A stretch of DNA of 64,000 bases from Mobula hypostoma (lineage: Eukaryota): positions 2,666,001-2,730,000 of the forward strand of contig NC_086109.1 in the NCBI RefSeq assembly GCF_963921235.1, in the 5' to 3' direction. The first letter of the stretch is position 1, and each line of letters begins with the position of its first letter. The notes beneath the pieces were generated by a model. That model worked only from the letters and a program-made list of their open reading frames with translations, did no database searches and was not told where the DNA came from. The translations under genes and the position numbers were made by a program. Of this stretch, positions 6,938 through 64,000 are shown in pieces.

Positions 6938-7199
6938 CTGTGGGACAGAGAGCAGAGGTGAGGGGTTCCATCAGTCAGTGAGCCACCTACAGACATGATC
7001 TAGTCACCCACACCCATCCCCTTGCCCTGCCTTCACCCCGACCAAACACCAATGGACCCCTCAAACGGCCCACACCTCTTTCTGGTAACACCAATCTAGG
7101 AGCCACCATTTCACAAGATTTAGGCATTCTCATTCTTCAACCTCACACCCTCTCATTTATGACAAATCCAAAACAGAATTACATCGGGTGCTTATACAC

Positions 7200-7615
7200 T
7201 GCACCCCAGTGACTGGGTGTCTGGGACAGTGAATCCCAGTGATTTGGTGTGTGGGGGACAGTGCACCCCGGTGACTGGGTGTATGGGGGACAGTGTACCC
7301 AGTGACGGGGTGTATGTGGGGGACAGTGTACCCCAGTGATGGGGTGTGTGTGGGGGACAGTGTACCCCAGTGACGGGGTGTGTATGGTGGACAGTGTACC
7401 CAGTGACGGGGTGTGTGTGGGGGACAGTGTACCCCAGTGATGGGGTGTGTGTGGGGGACAATGTACCCCAGTGACAGGGTGTGTATGTGGGACAGTGTAC
7501 CCCAGTGACTGAGAGTGTGGGGACAGTTTACCCAGTGAGTGGGTGTGTGGGGACAGTGTATCCTGTAGTGAGATATGTGGGGGATGGTTTACCCCAGTGA
7601 CTGGGTTTCAGGGGA
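7200..7615. repeat. Minisatellite, ~30-33 bp unit (GTGACKGGGTGTGTGGGGGACAGTGTACCCCA), ~13 copies
   Basis: Clear tandem recurrence of 'gggacagtgtaccccagtga'. Confidence 0.9.
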
Positions 7616-7682
7616 CATAATACACTCATGACGGTGTGTCTCAGTCCTGGGTAATTTGTGCATGTGGATGTTTTTGTTACAA

Positions 7683-8720
7683 TAAGACCATCAGACCATA
7701 AAACACAGGAGCAGGATTAGGCCTTTTGACCCATTGAGTCTGTACTTCTATTCAATCATGGCTGATCCTTTTCTTCCCCCCCCCCCACCAGCCCCAGTAC
7801 CCCACCCGCCCCAGTCCCCCATCCTCTCTCTCTAACCTTTGATGCTATGGCCAATCAAGAACCTATCAATCTCTGCCTTAAATACACCCAGTGACCTGGC
7901 CTCCACAGCTGCCTGTGGTAACAAATTCCACAAATGTACCGCACTCCGGCTGAAAAAATTTCCCTGCAGCTCTGTATTAAATGGATGGCCCTCTACCTTG
8001 AAGCTGTGCCCTCTTGTCCTAGACTCCACCATCATGGGAAACATCCTTTCCACATCTACTCTGTCTTGACCTTCCAACATTCAAAAGATTTCAATGAGAT
8101 CCCACCTCATCCTTCTAATTTCCAGTGAGTACAAACCCTGAGGCATCAAACGTTCCTCATAAGATAATCCTTTAATTCCTAGTATCATCCATGTGGACCT
8201 CCTCTGAACCCACTCCATTGCTAGCACATCTTTTCTCAGATAAGAAGCCCAAAACTGTTCACAATACGCATGGTGAGGCCTTACCAGTGCCTTATAAAGC
8301 CCCAGCATCACACCCCTGCTCTTGTAATTCTAGACCTCTTGAAATGAATTCTAACACTGCATCTGTCTTCCTCACCACAACTCATCCAGCAAGCTAACTT
8401 TTAGGGTGTTCTGCACAAGGGCTCGCAAGTCCCTTTCCATCTCAAATTCTACACATTTTCTTCTACTGCCAAAATGCATGACCATGACCATTGTATTTCA
8501 TTTCCCACTTTCTTGCCCATTCTCTTAATCTGTCTACATCCTTTCGCATCCCTTCTGTTTCCTCAACACTACCTGCCCCTCCACCAATCTTCGTATCATT
8601 TGTAAACTTGGCAACAAAGCCATCTATTCCATCATCTGAATCATTTATATGCAGCATAAAAAGAAGTGGTCCCAACACTGACCCCTGCACAACACCACTA
8701 GTCACTGGCAGCCAGCCACT
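7683..8720 (-). mobile_element. CR1 3' portion, decayed
   Basis: ORFs 8463..8705 (GVVQGSVLGPLLF...KFTNDTK), 8081..8311, 7832..8080; AAGACCAT-type tail near 7683-7700. Confidence 0.88.
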
Positions 8721-13276: not shown

Positions 13277-13397
13277 GAGTACAGATGTTACGGTGTTAGT
13301 CCGGCTGTTCTCCTCCAGAGGACAACGATGTTGACCACGACCATCACACTGACCAGAGCCACGATGACGAACAGAGCTATCCCCCATCCTGGTAATT
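13277..13397 (-). CDS. Transmembrane exon of IgV receptor gene 1: (E)LPGWGIALFVIVALVSVMVVVNIVVLWRRTAGLTP*
   Basis: Pyrimidine tract plus CCAG acceptor at 13398-13400; GTGAGT donor at 13271-13276; ~21-residue hydrophobic run followed by WRR; phase 1 matches the V exon donor. Confidence 0.8.
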
Positions 13398-13965: not shown

Positions 13966-14936
13966 AATCACTGATGACACAATGATAAATCCAATGTGGA
14001 GTCTAGAAGAAAATCACTTCCCCATGGAGCTTTGGGAATGTGGGATTTGTTCCCACAGGGGGTAGCCCTGCTGAATTGCACTGAGGGCTTCAGAGGGTAA
14101 CTGGAAAGACACACAAGGGACGGAAGTACAGGAAGCTTCCCATGATGTGGGTGAGCATTCAGCCCTTGAGCCTGTATCCCAGCTCTGACCCCAGTGAGTG
14201 AGGAAAGGTTTGATGGGCTGAATGTCCTCCTCTTGGCCCTATTTCCCATGTTCTGATGTACTTCATATAATAGTTAACCCTGGGATAGAGAAGAATGCTG
14301 AGTGAGATTATTGTGAATGTTATATTACTGTTGGAGTGAGTCAGGAACCATACTGCTGTGTGTGAGTGTACTGTTGTATCCGTGTACTGTGTCACTCACT
14401 GGGACACTATATTCAGTGTAATGAACACACAGGGTCTCACTCAGCACAGCACAGCATGAAGGCTGAGGAATAAACACCTTGCTGAGCTCTGACCTCAGTC
14501 TGGGGAATTAACAAGCAGTGCCTTCTGAAAATGGGATCCCTGAACATGACAGACCAGGACTTTGACCTGGGGATACAGTGTGTAACTGTGACCCACAGAT
14601 ACAGACCCCTCAGCCCATTCACACCAGCCTTTTCCACACCATCGGTTTATCTCCCATTCCCCTGCTCCAGCTCAGCTCCTCGAGGTTTGGATACACAAGG
14701 TCCTCCATTGATGGTTCAATCCTTCATGCCTCCTAGTCTTTGGGGATGTGGTGAGTGTGTCCCCCAGACTCACACTGACTCAGCCTCACTACACTGGGAT
14801 CGTGAGCCCAGCTCTGGACACGGGCAGTCAGTGGGGTTCAGTAAACAGGGGAACACACACGATCTGCCTTCACCCATTAATTGGGGGTGCTTGAGGAACT
14901 GGTGAAACCCGGGCCCCTCCGTGATGTCTCACTCAC

Positions 14937-15257
14937 CGTACACCTCCAGTCGCACTGTTGAATAAGTCCCTCTTCCCGGATGTGTTCTCATGGTCATCTC
15001 ATAATCACCAGCATCTTCTGCTCGTAGATTACGGATTAACAGACTGAAGTCTATGGGGAAAACAGTCATTCGTTGCCTGTCCTCAATAGTACCAAAGTAT
15101 TCAAAACCGCCTCTTGAGTACTTCATGATCCTGATTCGGGGTGATACTCGGTTCCATTCAATCTCCGTAAAGTTCCATGGAATTGAGATCCCAGAAAATA
15201 ACCAGGCCATCTGGCCCCGAACTCCATGCACAGTAGGAGGGGAAGCCCCAGTACTTG
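14937..15257 (-). CDS. Ig V-set exon 1, cysteine-free (CD2/SLAM/CEACAM N-domain-like)
   Basis: Acceptor ccctttgtctccacag at 15258; donor G|GTGAGT at 14936; 321 bp, phase 1/1, open frame; C-strand Trp (EIEWNR), 'FSLLIRNLRAEDAGDYE', 'TVRLEVY'; no Cys; NFT sequon. Confidence 0.9.
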
Positions 15258-15570
15258 CTGTGGAGACAAAGGGAAACGGTCAGTAGATGAGCTCAACAAC
15301 TGGAGGGGAGTCAGAGCTGTGACATCAGCAATATCAGAGCAGGCCATGTGGCTCATCTTCCAGCTCCCAGCCCAGTGAGAGAGCCGGTGCACTGTCCCTT
15401 CATCACACAGTGAGCCCAAGGGAGGAGCAGTGTGAAGACTCTTCGCACCTGGCCCTGAGGAAGGAAGCTGAACCCTGCTGTAGGGAAACATGAGAGCACA
15501 GACATGGGAAACAGGACCCAAGAGGTGAGTGCTCTTAAGATAAGAGACAGCTTACAGTTCTTTGCTGATA

Positions 15571-18361: not shown

Positions 18362-21300
18362 ATAGATAGGACAAAGGAGGAGGTCCTGAAGAGAGATTTC
18401 CAGGAGTTAGGAAGAAAGCTGAGAAGCAGGACCTCCAGGGTAGTAATCTCGGGATTGCTACCTGTGCCACGTGCTAGCGAGGGCGAGAGTAGTCGGATCA
18501 GGCAGATAAATGCGTGGCTGAGAGACTGGTGTAGGGGGCAGGGCTTCAGATTCTTGGATAATTGGGATCTTTTCTGGGGGAAGTATGACCTGTTCAAAAA
18601 GGACAGGTTACACCTGAACCCGAAGGGGACCAATATCCTGGCAGGAAAGTTTAATAGGGCTGTTAGGGAGGGTTTAAACTAATTTGGCAGGGGTATGGGA
18701 ACCGGAATGACAGAGCAGAGGAAGGGGAAAACAGAAATAAATCTAAGATAGTGAGCAGTAAAGATATCAGGAGAGACAGGCAGGTGATGGGGCAAATGTG
18801 TAGCCATTGGGATGAGTTGCAGTGCAATAAAGTTACAGTGAAATCAAAGCGAAAAGTACCAAATACTGGTCTTAAGGTGTTGTACTTAAATGCACGCAGC
18901 ATAAGGAATAAGGTGGATGATCTTGTTCTACAGCTACAGATTGGCAGGTATGATATTGTGGCCATCACTGAGACCTGGCTAAAGGATGCATGTCTCTGGG
19001 AGCTGAACGTCCAAGGATACACGGTGTATCGGAAGGATAGGAAGGTAGGTAGAGGGGGAGGCGTGGCTTTATTGGTAAGAAATGATATTAAATCATTAGA
19101 AAGAGGTGATATAGGATCAGAAGGTGCAGAATCTTTATGGGTTGAGCTAAAAAATCGCAGGGGTAAAAGGACCCTGATGGCAGTTATTTATAGGTCTCCA
19201 AACAGCTGCAGTGATGTGGACTACAAATTACAACAGGAGATAGAAAAGGTTTGTCAGAAGGGCAGTGTTATGATACTTGTGGGGGATTTTAACATGCGAG
19301 TAGATTGGGAAAATCAGGTCGGCACAGGATCTCAAGAGAGAGAATTTGTAGAATGTCTGCGAGATGGCTTTTTAGAACAGCTTGTTGCTGAGCCCACTAG
19401 GGGATCGGCTGTACTGGATTGGGTATTGTGTAATGAACCGGAGGTGATTGGAGAGATTGAGGTGAAGGAACCCTTAGGAGGCAGTGATCATAACATGATT
19501 GAGTTCACTGTGAAATTAGAAAAAGAGAAGCCGAAATCTGATGTGTCGGTGTTTCAGTGGAGTAAAGGAAATTACAGTGGCATGAGAGAGGAACTGGCCA
19601 AAGTTGACTGGAAAGAGATACTAGCGGGAAAGACAGCAGAGCAGCAGTGGCTGGAGTTTATGCGAGAAATGAGGAATGTGCAAGACAGGTATATTCCAAA
19701 AAAGAAGAAATTTTCGAGTGGAAAAAGGATGCAACCGTGGTTTACAAGAGAAGTCAAAGCCAAAGTTAAAGCAAAAGAGAGGGCATACAAGGAAGCAAAA
19801 ATTAGTGGGAAGAGAGAGGATTGGAAAGTTTTTAAAACCTTACAAAAGGAAACCAAGAAGGTCATTAAGAGAGAAAAGATTAACTATGAAAGGAAGCTAG
19901 CAAATAATATCGAAGAGGATACTAAAAGCTTTTTCAAGTATATAAAGAATAAAAGACAGGTGAGAGTAGATATAGGACCGATAGAAAATGATGCTGGAGA
20001 AATTGTAATGGGAGATGAGGAGATGGCAGAGGAACTGAACAAGTATTTTGCATCAGTCTTCACTGAGGAAGACAGCAGGATACCGGACACTCAAGGGTGG
20101 CAGGGAAGAGAAGTGTGCGCAGTCACAATTACGACAGAGAAAGTACTCAGGAAGCTGAATAGGCTAAAGGTAGATAAATCTCTTGGACCAGATGGAATGC
20201 ACCCTCGTGTTCTGAAGGAAGTAGCTGTGGAGATTGCGGAGGCATTAGCGATGATCTTTCAAAAGTCGATAGATTCTGGCATGGTTCCGGAGGACTGGAA
20301 GATTGCAAATGTCGCTCCGCTATTTAAGAAGGGGGCAGGGAAGCAAAAAGGAAATTATAGACCTGTTAGCTTGACAACCGTGGTTGGGAAGTTGTTGGAG
20401 TCGATTGTCAAGGATGAGGTTACAGAGTACCTGGAGGCATATGAGAAGATAGGCAGAACTCAGCATGGATTCCTTAAAGGAAAATCCTGCCTGACAAACC
20501 TATTACAATTTTTTGAGGAAATTACCAGTAGGCTAGACAAGGGAGATGCAGTGGATGTTGTATATTTGGATTTTCAGAAGGCCTTTGACAAGGTGCCACA
20601 CATGAGGCTACTTAACAAGATAAGAGCCCATGGAATTACGGGAAAGTTACATACGTGGATAGAGCGTTGGCTGATTGGCAGGAAACAGAGAGTGGGAATA
20701 AAGGGATCCTATTCTGGTTGGCTGCCGGTTACCAGTGGTGTTCCGCAGGGATCAGTGTTGGGGCCGCTTCTTTTTACATTGTACATCAATGATTTAGATT
20801 ATGGAATAGATGGCTTTGTGGCTAAGTTTGCTGATGATACGAAGATAGGTGGAGGGGCCAGTAGTGCTGAGGAAACGGAGAGTCTGCAGAGAGACTTGGA
20901 TAGATTGGAAGAATGGGCAGAGAAGTGGCAAATGAAGTACAATGTTGGAAAGTGTATGGTTATGTACTTTGGCAGAAAAAATAAACGGGCAGACTATTAT
21001 TTAAATGGGGAAAGAATTCAAAGTTCTGAGATGCAATAGGACTTGGGAGTCCTCGTACAGGATACCCTTAAAGTTAACCTCCAGGTTGAGTCAGTAGTGA
21101 AGAAAGCGAATGCAATGTTGGCATTCATTTCTAGAGGAATAGAGTATAGGAGCAGGGATGTGTTGCTGAGGCTCTATAAGGCGCTGGTGAGACCTCACTT
21201 GGAGTACTGTGGGCAGTTTTGGTCTCCTTATTTAAGAAAGGATGTGCTGACGTTGGAGAGGGTTCAGAGAAGATTCACTAGAATGATTCCGGGAATGAGA

Positions 21301-22686: not shown

Positions 22687-23159
22687 GTACCCCCCTCCCC
22701 CCACTACATTTGCTGATAGACAACAGTTGACGGGAGGAGGAGGCTGCATGAACATCCCCACCCTCCCTCACTGACGGTGGGACCCAGCTCGTGAGTGCTG
22801 GAGACAAGGCTGATCATTCCATCCATGTTCAGACAGAAGTGCTGAGTGGATGATCTCCCTTGACTCCATTTGCCGCATCCCTGCCCGGGTGAGCAGGCCA
22901 GCTCCACCTTCCCATGGTTCGTAGTTTTGCTTTCCTCTGCCACCCACGTGGACACTGTGCACCACCTGGAAATGTTTTAACCAGGAGTGGTGAGCTGGTG
23001 TCAGTGTGCAGTGACCTCGTTCTGACAGGATGAGTGGCTAGTGAAACACGGCATCAAATCGTGGCAGAAAGCGGGAGAGGATCAGAACTTCTCTGGTAAG
23101 CAGAAAGAGGAGAGTTACGTGAAGTGGAGAATGTAGCTGGGATGCCAATATAGAGTGAG

Positions 23160-23740
23160 AGACGAACACACAGACACAGACACAGAGACAGAGACAGGCA
23201 GACACACAGACACAGACGTGCACACAGACACAGACAGACACGCGCACACACACAGAGACACAGATACATGCGCGCGCACACAGACACAGACAGACACGCA
23301 CGTGCAGACACATGCGCCCACAGACGCACACACACTACATACACGCACACACACACAGACAGACGCACACACAGACACGCACACACAGACACAGACACAC
23401 ACAGACACAGACACACACACACACACACTACACACACAGACACGAACACACACAGACACACTACAAACACTTCAAACACAGACACACACACACTACAAAC
23501 ACGCGCACACAGACACTACACGCACACAGACACTACACGCACACAGACACTACACGCACACAGACACTACACGCACACAGACACAAACACGCACACAGAC
23601 ACAAACATACACAGACACTACAAACACACGCTACAAACACAGTCACACAGACACACACTACAAACACACAGAGAGCATACCTACAGCACACACATGTACA
23701 CAATCCCCCCTCTCTCTCTCCATCTCTCTGCACTGCTCTC
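23160..23740. repeat. Compound CA/CAGA microsatellite running into an assembly gap
   Basis: (ACACAG)n and (CA)n; the HT/CV-rich ORFs here are artefacts. Confidence 0.95.
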
Positions 23741-31520: not shown

Positions 31521-31680
31521 NNNNNNNNNNNNNNNNNNNNNNNNNNNNNNNNNNNNNNNNNNNNNNNNNNNNNNNNNNNNNNNNNNNNNNNNNNNNNNNN
31601 NNNNNNNNNNNNNNNNNNNNNNNNNNNNNNNNNNNNNNNNNNNNNNNNNNNNNNNNNNNNNNNNNNNNNNNNNNNNNNNN
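31521..31680. other. Assembly gap (160 N)
   Basis: N run. Confidence 1.
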
Positions 31681-31689
31681 GAAACATCA

Positions 31690-31940
31690 GTGTGTGATGG
31701 GACAGTGTAGAGGGAGCTTCACTCTGTGCCTGGCCCGTGTCCGGGGAGTGTGTGATGGGACAGTGTAGAGGGAGCTTCACTCTGTGCCTGGCCCGTGTCC
31801 GGGGAGTGTGTGATGGGACAGTGTAGAGGGAGCTTCACTCTGTGCCTGGCCCGTGTCCGGGGAGTGTGTGATGGGACAGCGTAGAGGGAGCTTCACTCTG
31901 TGCCTGACCCGTGTCCTGGGAGTGTGTGATTGGACAGTGT
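31690..31940. repeat. 58-bp tandem repeat (~4.3 copies visible, abuts gap)
   Basis: GTGTGTGATGGGACAGTGTAGAGGGAGCTTCACTCTGTGCCTGGCCCGTGTCCGGGGA repeated with near-identity. Confidence 0.95.
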
Positions 31941-32077
31941 TAAGGGACTTCCTCCATCCATCCTGTTCCTGCTGTTTCTCTCGTGGCAGTGTATGGTCCA
32001 GAACTGTCCCTGTAGTGTAAATAAAAGAGACGGAGAGAGGGAAGTGAAACAGATATATGTTATTTGGTTAAACTTAC

Positions 32078-32129
32078 AGACTGAGAAGAGGGTGAGCCAG
32101 AGGCCCACGAGGAAACACCTGATGTCCAT
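32078..32129 (-). CDS. Signal-peptide exon MDIRCFLVGLWLTLFSV(S) of IgV receptor gene 1
   Basis: ATG, 17 codons + 1 nt, then a perfect GTAAGT donor at 32072-32077; hydrophobic core; phase 1 joins V exon 1 as ...FSVS-STGA-SPP, a plausible cleavage site. Confidence 0.78.
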
Positions 32130-43332: not shown

Positions 43333-43959
43333 TGTGAGGGGATCCAGGAGTGCCCCTATTGACTGCTTGAAGAGAGACGGAGAGAGAGTTATTTATCACC
43401 GATATGTTGCTTTTGAAAAGAGAGAGAGAGAGAGAGACGGAGAGTAACGGTTGGACTGCCATTTCAAGGCATTGGAAGTAACTTTGGATTTCTACTGAGT
43501 TTGGAGTTGGAGACAGCACGGAGCAGCTCAAAAGTTGCTATGGTGACTGACAGCAGTTTGTTGATGTTAGTTTCAAGGACTTGTTGCCTGCTTGCACTTC
43601 TTTGCAGACAAAGGAAGGAGGGACTCTTTGAATGACAGGTGACGTTTAGCCTGGTGGGATAAGTAGGAAGTCAGATGATACAGACCTCAGACACATGATC
43701 TGGACACTGAATGAGCATTGCTGTGCCCGCAGAGAAAGTGGGTTTTGGAAGATCGATCAGGCGGATCGATCCAAATTGCTATTCCAGCGGTGAAGAAGGG
43801 GTTGACCAGTGGGGAGTTGTCTATTTGTCCACCCTTGCCGGGGTGATAGCTCCACCACAGAAGACCGTCCCCCTGGTTAAAGTCACAGTCGGTGACTTGT
43901 GAAGGATTTCGGAGGATGACGAGAAGATCAACGGCATCAGCTCACCTGAAGACTCAACT

Positions 43960-43992
<33 letters not shown>

Positions 43993-44282
43993 ACTACTCA
44001 ACTAAATACCATGAACTGAACTGAACTGAACTTTACTCAACATCGTAAGACTGTATCTTTTTACCCCTAGACTTAAAGAAGCTTGGTTTTCATACATATA
44101 TTTCCACACTTACTGATTTACGTACTTATATATATATTCATTGCTACCCTGTTTGATTTATCTACATATATATTACTGTATTGCATAGTTACTAATAAAT
44201 ATTAGTAGTTTATAGCAATATTGGACTCCAAAGTGTTTCTATTTTTGCTGGTTTCTTTATCCCCGTCACGGCGTATCTGACG
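43333..44282 (+). mobile_element. Solo LTR of the same family as the Gypsy at 51867-60461 (opposite orientation)
   Basis: Reverse complement of 51867-52854; TGTGAG start; GTGG TSD at 43329-43332 and 44283-44286. Confidence 0.9.
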
Positions 44283-45369: not shown

Positions 45370-46280
45370 ATCCATTGTCAATATATAAGTTTGCTGATGA
45401 CACCACAATTGTAGGCCGTATCTCGGGTAATGAGTTTGAGTACAGAGGGGAAATTAAGAACCTGGTGGCATGGTGCGAAGACAATAACCTATCCCTCAAC
45501 ATCAGCAAGATGAAGGAATTGGTTGTTGACTTCAGAAGGAGTAGCGGACCGCACGACCCCATTTACATTGGTGGTGTGCAAGTGGATCAGGTCAAAAGCT
45601 TTAAGTTCCTTGGGGTCAATATCACAAATGACCTGACTTGGTCCAACCAAGCAGAGTCCACTGCCAAGAAGGCCCACCAGCGCCTTTACTTTCTGAGGAA
45701 GCTGAAGAAATTTGTCCTGTCCCCTAAAACCCTCACTAATCTTTATAGGTGTACCGTAGAAAGCATTCTTCTAGGGTGCATCACAACCTGGTATGGAAGT
45801 TGTCCTGTCCAAGATCGGAAGAAGCTGCAGAAGATCGTGAACACAGCGCAGCACATCACATAAACCAATCTTCCATCCTTGGACTCACTTTACACTGCAC
45901 GCTGTCGGAGCAGTGCTGTCAGGATAATCAAGGACACGTCCCACCCAGCCAACACACTTTTCGTCCCTCTTCCCACTGGGAGAAGGCTCAGGATCTTGAA
46001 GACTCGTACGGCCAGATTGGGGAACAGCTTCTTTCCAACTGTGATAAGACTGCTGGACGGATCCTGACCCGGATCTGGGCCGTACCCTCCAAATATCCGG
46101 ACCTGCCTCTCGGTTTTTTTTTTGCACTACCTTACTTTCCCTTTTCTATTTTCTATTTATGATTTATAATTTAAATTTTTAATATGTACTATCGATTTGT
46201 ACTCCAGGGAGCATGAAGCGCAGAATCAAATATCGCTGTGATGATTGTACGTTCTAGTATCAACTGTTTGGCGACAATAA
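45370..46280 (+). mobile_element. Young Rex1/Babar 3' fragment
   Basis: ORF 45339..45863 (KFADDTTIVG...WCEDNNLSLN...QRLYFLRKL) and 45879..46067; (AAAGTAT)n tail. Confidence 0.9.
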
Positions 46281-47439: not shown

Positions 47440-50204
47440 GAGAATGGTTGTGGGGACAGTGTATTTTGTGTGGTATGTGGGAAGTCTGGGACACCTCCAG
47501 TCTCTCCGATAAATACAACTGCACCAGGTGCACTGAGTTTCAGCTCCTGAGAGAACATATTAAGAAACAGGATCTCAGCTTGATGACCTTTCACTCATAT
47601 GGGAGAATGAAGAGGAGATAGAAAAGAACTAGAGGGAGGTAGTTACCCCTGGATTTCAGGAGTGAGGTAACTGAGAGACTGCCAGGAGAAGGAGGGGAAA
47701 TGCACAGTCAGTGCAGAGTACACCTGTGGCCATTCCCCTCAATAATAATTTCAGATACTCTTGAGGGGGATGACCTACCAGGGAGGAGCCACTCTGTCAC
47801 TGAGTCTGGTGCTGTGGCTCAGATGAGCAGAGAGGTGAAGAGAACTGCAGTACTGATAGGAGATTTCTTCATCAGAGTAACAGAGATGAGGTTCCGTGGG
47901 TGAGATAGGGACAACCTGTATGTTGCCTCCCTGGTGTGAAAATCAGGGATATCTCGATTCCCGTCCGTGGCAATCTCAAGGGTGAGACTGAGCAGCCAGA
48001 AATCTTGAAACATCTTGGCACCAATGACATAGGTTGATAAGGTGAGGAGGTCCTGAAGACAGGTTTTATGGAGCTGGGTAGAAAGCTGAGAAACAGGACC
48101 ATCAGGATAGTACTCACTGGATTGCTGCCTGTGCCATGTGCCAGTGAGGGTAAGAATAGGATGATCTGGCAGGTGAATATGTAGCTGAGGAACTGGAGCG
48201 TGAGGCAAGCGATCAGATTTATGGATCTTTGTGATCTCTCCTGGGGCAGCTATGACCCGTACAGAAAGGACAGGTAACACCTGATACCGAGGGTCTCCAA
48301 TATCCTTGCGGGCAGGTTGGCTGGAGTTGTTTGGGTGGGTTTAAACAAGTTCAGCAGGGGGCTGGGAACTGGAATGATAGTGCTGAAGATAAGCGCTATC
48401 AGATGCAAACAGATGCAATGTGTAGTGAGACTCCTAGCAGGGAGAGCTACATGATAGGGAATAATTGCAGACAACAGGAATAGTTGTAATGTAAATGTGT
48501 TCAAAATCGAGAAAGGTGAATTCAGAACTAAAGGTGTTATATTTAAATGCGGGCAGAATATGGAATAAGGTTGATAAACTTGTAGCACAGTTACAGATTG
48601 GCAAATGATGTTGTAGGCATCACTGAATTCAGGCTGAACGATGATTAAAGCTGCATTTTATGTCCAAGGATACACAATGTATTGAAAGAATAGACAGGAA
48701 GGCAGAGGTGGTGATGTTGATCTGTTGGCAAAAAATGAAATTAAATCATTAGAAAGAAGTGATTTAGGGTCAGAAGATGTTGAATTGTTGTGGATAGAGC
48801 TAAGGAACTGCAAGGGTAAAAAGACCCCGACGGGTGTTATCTACAGATGCCCAAACAGTAGTAAGGATGTGGTCTACAAGTTACAATGGGAGATGAGAAA
48901 TGGCTGCAAAAGGGCAATGTTACGTCGTCATGAGGGATTTCAATATGCAAGTAGATTGGGAAAATCAGGTTGGTGTGGGATTCCAAGCGAGGGAATCTCT
49001 AGCATACCAGATATCTTTCTAGAGCAGCTTGTGTTTGAGCCCTGTCGGGGATCAGCTATTCAGGACTGGGTGATGTGTGATGAACCAAAATTGATCAGAG
49101 AGCTTAAGGTAAAAGAAACCTGAGGAGTAAGGTATCATTATGTCGTCAAGTTCACACTGAAATTTGAGAAAGAGAAGCTAAAATCAGATCTTTCAGTATA
49201 ACAGTGGAGTAAAATATATCACAGAGGCATGAGAGAGGAGTTGTCCAGAACTGATTCGAGAAAAAAATCACAGGCAGGGATGACAGCGGAGAAGCAACGG
49301 TTGCAATTTCTGAAAGCAATTCAGATGACTCAGGATATATAAATCTCAAAGAGTGAGAAGTATTCTAAAGGCAAGATGACACAACCATGGCTAACCAGGG
49401 AGGTCAAGGCCAACATGAAGGCCAAGGAGAGGGCATATAACAAAGCAAAAAAATTAGTGGGATGTTAGGGGACTTGGAAGATTTTAAATACCAACAGAAG
49501 CCAACTAAAAGTCATTAAGAAGGAAAATACCGAATAAAGCTGGCCAATAATATTAAAGACAATACCAACAATTTCTTCAGGACCATAAAGTGTAAAAGAG
49601 AGGTGAGAGTGGATATTGGGCCACTGGAGAATGATACTGTAATTGGGGACAAGGAAATGGCAGACAAACTGAATAAATATTTTGCATCAGTATTACTGTG
49701 GAAGAATCTAACAGTGTGGTGGAAGGTTCAGGTATCAGGGGTCATGTAATGTGTGAAGTTACCACGAGTAGAGAAAAGGTCCTTGGGAAACTGAAAGGTC
49801 TGATGGTAGATAAGACACCTGGAACAGATGGTCTACACCCCAGGCTTCTGATAGAGGTGGCTGAAGCGATTGTGAAGACATTAGTAATGATCTTTCAAAA
49901 ATCACTGGAGTCTCTAAGGGTTCCAGAAGACAGGAAAATTGCAAATGACACTTCATTCTTCAAGAAAGGAGAGAGGCAGAAGAAAGGAAATTATAGGCTA
50001 ATTAGCCTGACCTCAGAGGTTGGAAAAATGTTGGATTCGATTGTTAAGGATGTGTTTTTGAGCTACTCGGAGTCACATTATAAAATATGCCGTAGTCAGC
50101 ATAGTTTTCTCAAAGGAAACTTTGGCCTGACATATCTGTTGGAATTCTTTGAAAAAATAACAAGCAGGACAGACAAAGGAGAATTGGTTGATGCTGTAAA
50201 CTTG
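47440..50204 (+). mobile_element. Old CR1 (ORF1 esterase and ORF2 remnants)
   Basis: 'AVLIGDFFIR', ORFs 48725..49123 and 49698..50240 (KKGNYRLISL); a few CR1 bases resume after the LTR at 50782-50808. Confidence 0.85.
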
Positions 50205-50777
50205 TGTAACACCCTGGGAAAGGGTTCACTGCTAACGTAATGGTCTTTCTGTAGAAGCAGTGTTTGGGTGATGGTCAGAGATAACGGGTGTTTTGGAATG
50301 AGAGACGTCTAATGAAGGGAGTGAGTTTTCGTGTTGTGTGCCTGACACCGGTGTGAGCTGGGTCTTTGGTTTGGTGGGAGATGAAGGGAGAAGACGCCGG
50401 AGAGAAGGGGTCATAGGACTCAATCCGCAGCGGGGCCATGATTCAACGAAGCCCGGGGAGATCGAAGGAAGATCGGCAAAGGGGAAACCGTGAGCTCCAA
50501 CTTGTGCACATTATGCTGTTTCAATAAAATAGGCCCTTGCTTTTTGCTTTTTCTTTACGAACCCTTTAGTCAATTATGAATTATAAAGCTAAATCATTTA
50601 ATTGTATGCAGTGTACTGTCTGTTATTTTGTGGGACTTATTTGTAACCAGGTAACAGATCACACAGCATCGACTCAAACGGGGTTTTGGGGTTGGCGAGC
50701 ACCTCAATCTAACACGTTTGGCGGGGCTGGAGATTGTCTTCCCTAGACGTACGTAGCGACGGAACCAAAGTGTTTCA
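50205..50777 (+). mobile_element. Solo LTR (573 bp)
   Basis: TGTAAC...GTTTCA termini; CTTG TSD at 50201-50204 and 50778-50781; AATAAA at ~50523. Confidence 0.88.
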
Positions 50778-51270
50778 CTTGGGGCCTTCATCTTAAAAAG
50801 GATGTGCTGAGCACAGCACAGCATGAAGGCTGAGGAATAAACACCTTGCTGAGCTCAGACCTCAGTCTGGGGAATTAACAAGCAGTGTCCTGGGAAAAAG
50901 ACTGGATAACTGGGATCCCTGAACATGACAGACCAGGCCTTTGACTGGAGATACAATGTGTAACTGTGACCCACAAATACAGACTGTTCAGGCCATTCAC
51001 ACCAGGTCCATTCTCCCTGTGTGCTGAGCTCCCTCTGTCTCAGATACATGAGATTCCCCAGTGTTGGTTCGATCCCTTCCGGCTCCTGTCTCAGTCTCGG
51101 TGGATGTGATGGGTGTATCCTCCAAACTCACACTGACTCAGCCTCACTACACTGGGACTGTGAGCCCAGCTCTGGACACGGGTAGTCAGTGGGGTGCAGT
51201 AAACAGGGAAACACACAGGATCTGCCCTCACCCATCCATTAGGGGTGTTTCAGGGACCGGTCTTACTCAC

Positions 51271-51591
51271 CGTACACCTCCAGTCGCACTGTTGTTCTTT
51301 TTTCAGCTCCTGATCCTGCTGCAGTAAAAATAAGCTCATAATCACCAGAGTCCTCTCTCCGTAGATCATGGATTTCCAGACTAACGTTCCCAGGATGAAA
51401 AGTTATCCTGTTCTTGTACTGCTCATTACTGAAGTAGCTGATGTTCCCATTCGAGTACTTCACATTCTTGATTCTGGGTGATACCCGAATCCAATGAACC
51501 TCAAAGTCTGGACTGACTGGGATCCCAGAAGGTAAGGAGACTGAGTGTCCCTGAGTTCCGGTCACAGTGGTAGGGGGAGCCCCAGTCCCAG
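51271..51591 (-). CDS. Ig V-set exon 2, cysteine-free paralog of exon 14937-15257
   Basis: Acceptor tcttgtctcctcag at 51592; donor G|GTGAGT at 51270; 321 bp, phase 1/1, open; 'EVHWIRVSPRI', 'SLEIHDLRREDSGDYE', 'TVRLEVY'; sequons NIS and NVS. Confidence 0.9.
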
Positions 51592-53370
51592 CTGAGGAGA
51601 CAAGACAAGACAGTCCGTAGGTGAGGTCAGTGATAGGAAGAGGAATCAGACCTGGGAAAATCAAAGACACAGGAGGAAGCCAAGCGGCCCAGCATGGTGT
51701 TCCCAGCCCCATGAGAAAGACAGCACAAAGTTAGTGTTGTTTCATGCCGAGACCCTTCATCAAGACTCCAGACTGTCTGTACCCGGCCCTCAGAAATGAA
51801 GTTGCAGCCTGCAGCCTGATATCAATGGTCAGGTGGGGGGAGGAGGTGGTCACAGATATTTTCTAGTGTCACGAACCCTGTGATGGGAATAAAGAACCAA
51901 CAGAGATGGAAAACACTTTGGCATCCAGTATTGCTATAAACTAATAATATTTATTAGTAACTATGCAATACAGTGATATAAATGTAAATAAATCAATCAG
52001 GTTAGTAATGATTATATATATATATATATAAGTAAGTACAGTATCAGTAAGTGTGGAAATATATGTATGATAAACCAAGCTTCTTTAGGTCTAGGGGTAA
52101 GAAGATACAGTCTTATGATGATGAGTAAAATTCAGTTCAGTTCAGTTCGTGGTATTCAGTTGAGTAGTGATGGAGAGAGAGAGAGAGGGAGAGATTTGAA
52201 TCTTCAGGTGAGCTGACGCCATCGATCTTCTCGTTGTCCTTCGAAATCCTTTAAAGGTCACCGACTGTGACTTTAACAAAGGAGACCAGTTTTCTGTGGT
52301 GGAGCTATCACCCAGGCCAGGGTGGACACATGGACAACTCCCCAACAGTCAACCCCTTTCCTCTTTTCACTGCAAGAGCGATGGATCGATCCGCCCGATC
52401 GATCCTCCAACACCCACTTTTTCTGCGGGCACAACAATGCTCATTCGGTGTCCAAACATGTGTCTGAGGTCTGTATCATCTGACCTCCTATTTTATCTTC
52501 TCGTGCTGAGCATAAACTGTCACTCAGATAACTCCTCCTTCCTCTCTCTGTGAAGAAATGCAAGCAGGCAAAAAGTCCTTGAAGAAGTATCAACAACCTG
52601 CTAAAAATCATAACATCGAGTGTCCATTAAATAACACCCCCTTCAGTCACCATTGCAACTTACGAGCTGCTTGCTGCTGTGTCCAACTCCAGCAGAAATC
52701 CAACAGTCAACCAGTTCTTTCTCGTTCCTTAAAGTGGCAGTCCCACAGTGAGTTTTCGTCTCTCTCTTTTACAAACAAGCTTTCGGTGGTAAATAACTCT
52801 CTCTCTCTCTTTTCAAAAGCACAGTTCACAGGGGTACTTCAGGGTCCCCTCACGCTCCCCTTCCTCAGGAGAAAAGCAATTGATGAAGACTATTTTTTTT
52901 GTCCAAATGTAAATTACAGAGTTTGAAACAATACAGGTAAAATCATCAAATAACTGAGCAAAAATGTGTTCAAATTCCAACTTAATATCTGGATAACTAA
53001 TCAGCTATAATATTGTCAGTAACTTTCACATGTTTGATTTTTAAGTCACATTCCTGCAATATCAGACTCCAATTTAAAAATCTCCTATTCGTATCCTTCA
53101 TCTTAGTTAGAAACATCAACGGATTATAACCCGTGTAAACCACAAGTGGTCTCTGGGCAACAGAAAGATTTTGAGGTCTCTGGTCATAGGCCTCAAAATG
53201 TTGTAAAGCCAGAATAAGTGCTAGTAATTCCTTCTCAACAGTTGAATATTTTTTTCTGGTGTACATTAAATTTTTTTCAGAAATAAGCTACTGGATGTTC
53301 AATGTCATTCACTCCTTCCTGTAACAGTACCGCCCCAGCAGCTTCGTCACTAACTCCTGTTGTTATAGAA

Positions 53371-57753: not shown

Positions 57754-60203
57754 TATAGAAAATGGCTTTGAAAAAATCAGGTGCTTTGAGCACAGGATGA
57801 TAACACAGGATGTTTTCCAGATGTTCAAATGCTTCCTGGCAAAGGTCATTCCATACAAATTTTTCACTCTTCCCTCGGAGTTTTGTTAGGGAGAGAGCAA
57901 TGTCAGCAAAGTTCTTACAACACTTACAGTAATACCCAACCATTCCCAAAGTCCTTCTCAAAGCTTTCTTGCTAGTCAGAACAGGAACTTCAGCAATCGC
58001 TTGAACATTGGCCTGTACAGAAGCCAGTTGGCCTTGGCCCACCACATAACCCAGATATGTAACTGTGTCATAGACAAACTCACTTTTAGCGAGGTTCACA
58101 GTAAGACTGGCCTTGGAAAGCCTGTCAAACAGTTTTTCTACCATTGCAATATGCTCTTCCCACGTGTCATTCTATACAACCAGATCATCAATATAAGCCC
58201 CTGTGTTTTCTAAACCTCTAATCGCAGAATTGATCATTCTTTGAAATATCCCTGCTGCATTTTTCATCTCGAAGTGTTAGACATTGTACTCATACAGTCT
58301 AGACGGTGTCACAAATACTGATATCTCTTTAGCCCTCTCTGTTAAAGGAACACCCCAGCATCCTTTTAACAGGTCTATCTTAATAAGGTATTTAGCCTTC
58401 CTCACTCTATCAATACAATCATCCATTCTCTTTCCTTGTTCTTTCTTGTTTCTAATTCCTTTTTCAACCAAGTCAGACACATCAGACTTTAACTGAGCTT
58501 TAACATAAGGTTCAGAATCCTGTGAACTCACAGGGACTTCCACAACCTGAACACATGCAATCGGAACAGCTGCCTCTTTTGGGCTGTCATCACTTGTCCC
58601 AGTTTCAAATTCAAGGTCACCCCGAACCTCACAGCTATTCTCTGGCAAACTCTTTTCTGGAGTAAACTCAACCTCGTGGGATAAAACAACTTCGTCTGCT
58701 TTCTTATCAAACCCCTGCAAGGTAGCGGCATCCTCTGCATCTGGGTACCCTTACCTCATCAGGAACACAACTTTTCAACTCATCACACAAAACAAACCCT
58801 TCCGAGCTGTAAAAATCATCAGGGTCCGACAATAAACCCCTTTGCTGCCACCTCTCCCTTTTAAACTGTCTCTGTCTTCCTGCCACGTGATCTTCATATT
58901 GGCATTTCTCCCTTTCGAGCTGTCTCTGTCTTTCTGCCTCTTCTCTCTGTCTTGCTGCCTCTCTAGCTTCTTTCTTGAATTGTTTTAATTTCAATTCATG
59001 CTCCATTCTTAATTTTTCCAACTGAAGCTGAAACTCATCCTCAGCAGATTCACCTTCCACGAACAACTCTAACGCCTCCTCATCAAACGTTCCCTTATCT
59101 ATAAAATGCTGGGCTATTATCGTCTGCACCTGGGCTCTCCTCATTATAGTGTCACCTCTAGTCTAACTTTTGATCAATTCCCAACAGCACAACCCTCGTA
59201 GCATCATCCAACGCTTCTGGGGTTTGTTCCAACATAAACTCCACAACACTAATGTCTATTTCTGCTGTATTTCTACACAACCAAATCAAGAGGGATTTTC
59301 CCCCAACCAATTCAAACCAGCCTCTCGACCAATTTGTTCATATCCCCGAATTTATGTCACGAACCCCGTGACAGGAATAAAGAACCAGCAGAGATGGAAA
59401 GCACTTTGGAGTCAAGTATTGCTATAAGCTAATAATATTTATTAGTAACTATGCAATACAGTAATATGAATGTAAATAGATCAAACAGATTAGCAATGAT
59501 TACTTATATAAGTAAGTATCAGTAAGTGTGGAAATATATGTATGAAAAACCAAGCTTCTTTAAGTCTCGCGGTAAAAAAATACAGTCTTACGATGATGAG
59601 TAAAGTCAGTTCAGTTCATGGTATTGAGTTGAGTTGTGATGGAGAGAGAGAGAGAGGGAGAGATTTGAATCTTCAGCTGAGCTGACGCCGTCGATCTTAT
59701 CGTTGTCCTTCGAAATCCTTTGAAAGTCACTGACTGTGACTTTAACAAAGGGGACTGGTTTTCTGTGGTGGAGCTATCCCCCAGGTCAGGGTGGACACAT
59801 GGACAACTCCCCACCAGTCAACCCCTTTCCTCTTTTCACTGCAAGAGCGATGGATCGATCCGCCTGATCGATCCTCCAACACCCACTTTTTCTGCGGGCA
59901 CAACAATGTTCATTCAGTGTCCAAACATGTGTCTGAGGTCTGTATCATCTGATCTCCTATTTTATCTTCCTGTGCTGCGCATCAACTGTCACTCAAATAA
60001 CTCCTCCTTCCTCACTCTGTGAAGAAATGCAAGCAGGCAAAAAGTCCTTGAAGTATCAACAACCTGCCAAAAATCATAACATTGAGTGTCCATTAAATAA
60101 CACCGCCTTCGGTCACCATAGAAACTTACGAGCTGCTCCGTGCTGTGTCCAACTCCAGCAGAAATCCAACAGTTAACCAGTTCTTTCTCGTTCCTTAAAG
60201 TGA

Positions 60204-60406
60204 NNNNNNNNNNNNNNNNNNNNNNNNNNNNNNNNNNNNNNNNNNNNNNNNNNNNNNNNNNNNNNNNNNNNNNNNNNNNNNNNNNNNNNNNNNNNNNNNN
60301 NNNNNNNNNNNNNNNNNNNNNNNNNNNNNNNNNNNNNNNNNNNNNNNNNNNNNNNNNNNNNNNNNNNNNNNNNNNNNNNNNNNNNNNNNNNNNNNNNNNN
60401 NNNNNG
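60204..60406. other. Assembly gap (203 N) inside the Gypsy 5' LTR
   Basis: N run. Confidence 1.
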
Positions 60407-62770: not shown

Positions 62771-64000
62771 TTTTTGAATAGAGACCTAGTCTATTACCCA
62801 CACTAGTGACATGTCAGACCCACCACATCAGAAACCAGTCTGGTGAACTTTGTGATAATTCCCCTTCAGCATTCATTTCTCACCCATTATCACAGATTCC
62901 AACATTGTCCCCGCTCCCAGTGTCAGCTGGGGAGATGTGGGGTTCCCAGTTTTCTCTCTCTCCCTCCTTTTTGAAACAGTCTGTAGAAACCATTCCTTAA
63001 ACTGTAGAGTTTGCCAGGTGATAACCAGGAAGTTGAGTAACTCTACTGACACCTTGCCACAGACTCCGGGATGGAGATCATCAGGCCTGTGTCAATTATC
63101 CATTTTCATGATGTTATTTCGTCATTGATGCTGATGGATTTTGTTTCTACACTTGCATTCAACACTTGTGTATCCTGTATTTCTGGCAGGTTTTTGTGTG
63201 TTCCACAAAGACACATAAAAAGCCATGGTTATTTCCTCTACTGTTCCTTCATTCCCCATTACAAATACCCACATCTGTCTGTAAGGGAACTACAGTTGTA
63301 CCTGCTGCTGTGTTTGTTTCATGTCCTGATTCCGGCTCTCACAGTCTGTTCTTAATACCCTTCAACTTTCCTATTTCGCTTTCTTCAACGATATATCTGT
63401 GACCCTTTGCTGTGTTCATAATCAATCTCAATCCTCAGGCTTACGACTCATTCTGCAGGTTAACAACCATTTCTGGCAATGATATCAGGATTTTATTTAT
63501 CATTGTCTCTCACTGCTTCCATGTCCAATTTTGTAATTTGGGCTATTGACAGATCGACAGTCTGTCTGCCAAGAGAGAGAGAAACCCAGCACTTGCACCA
63601 AAAAGGGAGATGACTGTTAACAATTTCCACTCTCTTTCTGCATTCCAGTGCCCCCCACACCCGCCACTTCCTGCCCCCATCATCCACCATTCCAACAGCA
63701 ATTCCCCATCAAGATCTTTACCCATGAAATATCTCCAGACCAGATCCCAGTTCCTGGGTTCGGAGGGGTCCTGAGTCACATGTACTGAATTCCACATCCC
63801 TGCCAATCCTTCCCAATCCTGTGAACAACTGATACCTGTTTCTCAAGCTCTGTTTCCAGAATTAGAAGCAGGATGGTTCTATGGCTGCAGAAAAAGTCAA
63901 TCCTCTGTCCCAAAACCCACCAGTAACCAAACTTTTCTTGCTCTCCATGTCAAACTCGTGTTTTATGAGAGTGTGACAGGAGAGACAGCTTCACTGTGTC

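Follow-up and report, generated by a model that had tools for sequence, protein, structure and literature searches.

The donor-side intron of V1 and V2, two paralogous V exons in the 64,000-nt stretch of Mobula hypostoma DNA analyzed here (hereafter the 64-kb window), is a mosaic of young and old segments, in which two patches of about 180 and 225 nt carry about 7% and about 13% mismatches, while mismatches reach the old level of 39% in the exon body, 33% in the acceptor-side intron, and 40% in the stretch between the patches. This contrast between exon and intron is not a product of chance, because none of 2000 permutations reached the value of a maximum chi-square scan over the homologous kilobase, which put the breakpoint eight codons short of the end of the exon, at 14961. 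Comparison of the two copies leads us to favor, with moderate confidence, patchy non-allelic gene conversion between old paralogs as the best account of the intron mosaic. The mosaic and its statistics are shown by the two sequences compared here, from which the mechanism, its direction, and any part that selection played in sparing the exon are inferred.

Both V exons have good acceptor and donor sites and are located as follows (positions are those of the window):

14937-15257, minus strand: V1 exon, 107 codons, phase 1-1, a cysteine-free V-set domain, from its translation and splice sites
51271-51591, minus strand: V2 exon, the conservative paralog, 107 codons, phase 1-1, a cysteine-free V-set domain

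Because neither exon encodes a single cysteine, the canonical B-F disulfide is lacking in both domains. Both match the Pfam V-set model (E = 3e-6 for V1 and 6.5e-10 for V2), and both match the Pfam 2B4 and SLAM models only weakly, under the cut-off. An AlphaFold model of V1, computed with 61 family V domains as input, had a pLDDT of 90.8 and displays the A'BCC'C''DEFG strands, and a Foldseek search with it placed CD48, 2B4, CD84, and CD2 on top (TM 0.72-0.85), with CEACAM structures ranking under CD48, 2B4, and CD84. By sequence, the closest matches are proteins of batoids (Hemitrygon, Mobula, Hypanus, Pristis, and skates) labelled "SLAM family member 5/8/9-like," "Ly-9-like," or "CD48-like," many of which have two or three tandem V domains; no CEACAM or SIRP name was found among the near-relative sequence matches. 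Judging from the fold search and these names, the domain family is of the CD2/SLAM type and not of the CEACAM/SIRP type, with which the earlier note on this DNA had drawn a comparison. An N-terminal V-set domain without the canonical disulfide is shared with the CD2/SLAM receptors (CD48, 2B4/CD244, CD84, CD2, and Ly9), and CEACAM N domains, too, are without a disulfide. A literature search gave nothing specific on SLAM-family work in cartilaginous fish. For the CEACAM/SIRP comparison family, gene conversion between paired receptors is known, according to one paper (PMC2832619).

V1 apparently lies in an intact three-exon gene (leader, V, and transmembrane), as read from the translations of the candidate exons, the other two of which are the following:

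32078-32129, minus strand: V1 gene leader exon, MDIRCFLVGLWLTLFSV, with a phase-1 donor, resembling the leaders of relatives P0001-P0007
about 13288-13397, minus strand: V1 gene transmembrane exon, ELPGWGIALFVIVALVSVMVVVNIVVLWRRTAGLTP, followed by a stop

The transmembrane exon encodes an Asn within the membrane span (VVVNIVVL). The tail comprises nine residues, WRRTAGLTP, and then a stop, ahead of a GT donor-like site; no tyrosine motif, and hence no ITSM (TxYxxV/I), is present in this tail, whereas some relatives bear such motifs (TVYADI in P0008 and TEYAAV in P0009), as do the CD2/SLAM receptors. The two ray genes also differ from CD2/SLAM receptors in that neither has a C2 exon in the window, where C2 and tail portions from 13 relatives, used as tblastn queries, matched no such exon; a C2 domain is present in relatives such as P0002 and P0013. 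For V2, no leader, C2, or transmembrane exon and no tail was found anywhere in the 64-kb window. A weakly matching exon candidate for V2 at 46024-46089 proved spurious. V2 could stand alone as an orphan exon, belong to a gene whose start lies past position 64000, or serve the V1 gene as an upstream V exon.

The two domains hold very different positions in the tree of the 61 family V domains. V2 shares 86-87% identity with the V domain of a protein from Mobula hypostoma that bears the annotation "SLAM family member 9-like," and it forms a clade with Mobula and Hemitrygon proteins (support 95/88, 100/99, and 99/97), including one with P0013, P0014, and P0028 (100/99). V1 falls outside this clade; its tip branch measures 0.84, where the median is 0.13, and no other of the 61 domains is as derived. 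In a search for V1 orthologs, no protein surpassed 56% identity, either among 1.84 billion representative proteins or by a word-based search. The placement of V1 and V2 as sisters was not rejected by an AU test (P = 0.11), so that the protein tree alone gives no date for their split. The V1 protein has changed several times faster than its relatives while most of its fold-defining residues were kept: it has 22 family-unique residues, the most of any row (V2 has 1, and the median is 3), and retains 13 of the 16 columns conserved at >= 90%. Because these columns are kept, because its changes favor variable columns (P = 0.001), and because its frame is open, as in only 4-6% of neutral simulations at its divergence, V1 looks like a functional, fast-evolving domain.

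Alignment of the two copies resolved the flanks of the V exons into the following segments:

14374-14443, minus strand: old homology probably continuing outward of patch A, aligned locally with 50602-50676 at about 65% identity
14444-14625, minus strand: young patch A, pairing with 50811-51003, 13 mismatches in 181 aligned bases
14626-14735, minus strand: old middle stretch, pairing with 51004-51093, 60% identical with 30 gap columns
14736-14899, minus strand: young patch C, pairing with 51094-51257, 87.2% identical, 21 mismatches in 164 bases
14927-14961, minus strand: donor and last eight codons (..TTVRLEVY), pairing with 51261-51295, 2 mismatches in 35 bases
15258-15478, minus strand: acceptor-side intron, pairing with 51592-51812, old homology

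Taken in order, patch A, the middle stretch, patch C, the donor block, the exon body, and the acceptor-side intron are thus 93, 60, 87, 94, 61, and 67% identical. The individual figures given earlier for the similarity of the donor-side intron hold: there is exactly 1 mismatch in 78 nt between 14443-14520 and 50810-50887 (the first 78 nt of patch A are 97-99% identical), the 85-90% noted for ~14760-14900 against ~51120-51250 becomes 87.2% over patch C, and the longest identical run over the exon end and donor is the 30 nt of 14931-14960. The acceptor-side intron is, as had also been noted, much less alike (67% identity across 125 nt, 61% when 220 nt are taken), and its homology stops in V2 at a repeat beginning at 51867. 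The donor-side intron is not uniformly similar, however, because the 110 positions of 14626-14735, which lie between the two patches, are just 60% identical. This middle stretch differs in divergence from the neighboring patches (P = 9e-8), and since its homology is real (alignment score z 9.3 against shuffles), it is old sequence and not an insertion. A single recent duplication is excluded by the same observation, the stretch being truly homologous yet old. Patch A has two indels, of 12 nt and 1 nt, and patch C is parted from the donor block by a 24-nt indel within 14900-14926. The patches are found only twice within the window and are collinear with the exon in both copies.

Old homology may continue past patch A, although the local alignment is suggestive only, its score being reached by 3 of 300 shuffles. 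Exactly at the outer boundary of this patch, copy 2 has 134 nt extra (50677-50810), holding a CpG cluster, with no counterpart in copy 1 and no second copy in the window. Homology between the V1 and V2 genes is limited to about 1 kb.

The old level of divergence is also seen at silent sites of the exon. In the exon body, the Nei-Gojobori method (NG86) gave a pS of 0.47, a dS of 0.72 (bootstrap 0.45-1.23), and a dN of 0.50, and four-fold sites differ at 7 of 24. Among the 43 codons whose residue is shared by V1 and V2, there are 13 silent differences at 34 silent sites, against 4.1 expected at the rate of the patches (Poisson, P = 3e-4), and overall the silent sites of the exon are 3-4 times as diverged as the similar intron patches. 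The earlier note took the coding sequence to be evolving faster than the neighboring non-coding DNA; the patches are indeed far less diverged than the exon, but the middle stretch and the acceptor-side intron match the exon itself in divergence. Because both the silent sites and these old non-coding stretches are diverged, the contrast between exon and intron is a matter of age, or of constraint on the patches, and not of the speed of the exon.

According to the conversion reading, V1 and V2 would each encode the N-terminal V domain of one of two old paralogs that lie in tandem and belong to a ray-expanded CD2/SLAM-like family. The old divergence of this pair (about 35-45% mismatches, K about 0.45-0.7) would persist in both exon bodies, in the intron on the acceptor side, and over part of the intron on the donor side. 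The much younger segments 14444-14625 and 14736-14899, with about 7-13% mismatches, would then derive either from one event repaired in patches or from two events of similar age, each of which would have copied a few hundred bases between the paralogs. The second patch probably runs on through the donor into the last eight codons, as the alignment suggests, where there are 0 differences at just 5 four-fold sites. Conversion would have bypassed the V exon body through chance or through selection against converted V domains. Of the two explanations offered earlier, a conversion tract that begins in the G strand fits these data, except that the tract is patchy and not one-sided and continuous.

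Several observations are consistent with conversion. The low-divergence segments are discrete (7-13% mismatches against 33-40% in the flanks), and the contrast holds at neutral sites, with the pS of 0.47 in the exon and 60-67% identity in the old intron stretches. Mismatches are evenly spread inside the patches (variance/mean 0.94 and 1.10; P = 0.39 and 0.20), which matches a tract of a single age, whereas conserved motifs would cluster. A length of about 180-225 nt is usual for a conversion tract, and the 134-nt indel beyond 14444 marks a place where the tract could have stopped. Identity between tandem V domains of a single protein in the family spans 50% to 95%, as would fit recent duplication or homogenization of exons there.

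Mosaics of this kind have precedents. Shyue et al. (1994) reportedly described gene conversion of introns in the X-linked red/green opsin genes of humans. The opsin genes resemble the ray copies in that the introns of tandem paralogs are more alike than the adjoining exons; conversion evens out their non-coding DNA and leaves functionally distinct exon sequence different, but the opsins have far lower divergence and population data, while the ray V exons are 39% diverged and represented by two sequences, and selection against exon conversion is only inferred for them. A study of paired NK receptors (KLRC/NKG2 and others), which itself refers to Shyue et al. for intron conversion in the opsins, described a patchy "merohomogenization" over a few hundred nucleotides and read it as gene conversion (PMC3210942). 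The short, discontinuous homogenized tracts with unconverted sequence between them resemble the pattern of the ray copies; in KLRC, however, the ligand-binding exons are homogenized, whereas the body of the ligand-binding exon is left out in the ray.

The main competitor of gene conversion, though an unlikely one, is that the patches serve a function within the intron, for example as an enhancer or a splicing control, and were kept by purifying selection in both paralogs as neutral sites of intron and exon drifted apart. The patches are islands between old homologous sequence, as conserved regulatory elements look, their similarity starts directly at the donor site, and the indels sit between blocks and not within the block cores. 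Moreover, patch C has a core of 32 nt that matches perfectly between the copies and includes CTGACTCAGCC, an AP-1/MARE-like site by sequence match, whose two occurrences at 14775-14785 and 51133-51143 are the only ones in the window. The even spread of mismatches, without motif-like islands, speaks against such an element, however, and 97-99% identity over 78 nt alongside a dS of about 0.7 needs a near-ultraconserved constraint, which would be unusual in a repeat-rich, fast-evolving immune gene cluster. When both strands of the patches were folded as RNA, no structure signal emerged (z from -1.5 to +1.0), and the Rfam search gave a chance-level match only. Stops occur in every frame of the patches but one, a 35-codon frame (MGEGRSCVFPC...) that is open on the minus strand in both copies of patch C (14770-14877 and 51128-51235) and shows 3 silent and 3 replacement differences between them. 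This frame probably stays open because of the high DNA identity, without a coding role, and no open reading frame in the patches is kept beyond expectation from identity.

We regard as doubtful the reverse history, in which V1 and V2 are recent duplicates and the V1 exon body, upstream intron, and middle stretch were overwritten from a third, divergent paralog. It predicts the same mosaic as gene conversion between old paralogs, and it agrees with the AU test, which left V1 and V2 free to be sisters; since there are only two sequences, the direction of conversion is unreadable from them. Such a history nevertheless requires at least two separate overwritten tracts, and no donor lineage is known, given the search for V domains similar to V1 among the 1.84 billion representatives. 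The limit of homology at about 1 kb and the lack of a leader or transmembrane counterpart near V2 are likewise unexpected for recent duplicates.

It is improbable, too, that V1 and V2 are alternative or consecutive V exons of one transcription unit, with the patches as selector-like cis-elements, a reading that stems from the position of V2 upstream of V1 on the same strand, from its having, within the window, neither a leader nor a C2 nor a transmembrane exon, and from the multi-V relatives. If it were true, the patches near the donors would govern the choice of V exon, a selector-like splicing control in a vertebrate immune receptor.

A recent duplication after which the V exon alone came under diversifying selection or relaxed constraint is, in our judgment, very improbable. 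The low residue identity of V1 and V2 (47.7% by tblastn, close to the ~45% noted by eye) and the fixed motifs RVSPRI, KYS, GDYE, and TVRLEVY were rightly observed, and this explanation gains from the acceleration and open frame of the V1 protein, from the roughly equal differences by codon position (42/30/42 of 98), and from a pairwise dN/dS of 0.69 (NG86) whose bootstrap interval of 0.38-1.15 extends above 1, with 8% of replicates >1. The ratio is neither demonstrably above 1 nor far under 1. The residue differences, which were claimed to cluster in the BC, C'-C'', and FG regions, are scattered across the entire domain. When the variable sites were mapped on the predicted structure, 23 of 49 positions differed in the ligand-binding GFCC'C'' sheet, against 34 of 58 elsewhere (59%; P = 0.25), and 22 of 41 when the last eight residues were left out (47-54% with or without them). 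Because the changes are not concentrated on this sheet, diversifying selection on a binding face is unsupported. Amino-acid selection is ruled out as the cause of the exon/intron contrast, since the exon is 3-4 times as diverged as the patches even at silent sites, whose divergence such selection does not raise, and since the non-coding stretches 14626-14735 and 15258-15478 reach the divergence of the exon; the proposal that diversifying selection is the source of the contrast is contradicted on both counts.

That the similar blocks are dispersed repeat copies inserted in both introns is the least credible explanation, and in spite of the richness of the window in repeats and the sharp outer edge of similarity at 14444/50811, it is weakened by the occurrence of the blocks just twice in 64 kb, by their same order, orientation, and donor distance in both copies, and by the old homologous sequence that bridges the blocks, which continue into the exon.

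Repeats found elsewhere in the window include three copies of a repeat of ~0.9 kb (51867-52736, 59355-60202, and 43334-44274), two of which are 90.6% identical; one copy abuts the acceptor-side homology of V2, and another ends at an N gap at 60204. Retroelement copies that are 65-76% identical lie at 18377-20568, 48044-50204, 754-2638, and 7687-8718, and 20695-20925 translates to a reverse-transcriptase-like motif, a side match of tblastn. Tandem repeat arrays were seen at 31689-31951, 23157-23694, and 7196-7617, the first of which consists of ~58-nt units that are 95-96% alike and lies between an N gap (31521-31680) and the V1 leader exon.

Most likely the mosaic has an ordinary explanation, patchy gene conversion in an immune multigene cluster, a fresh example of a pattern already known from opsins, MHC, and NK receptors, and its general interest is modest. 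It does carry a caution, in that an exon that seems to evolve faster than its intron needs a check of silent sites and of the whole intron before selection is claimed. For the ray, the mosaic would mean that concerted evolution acts patchwise within a ray-specific cluster of CD2/SLAM-like receptors, one of which, V1, has diverged far past any known relative and yet appears intact.
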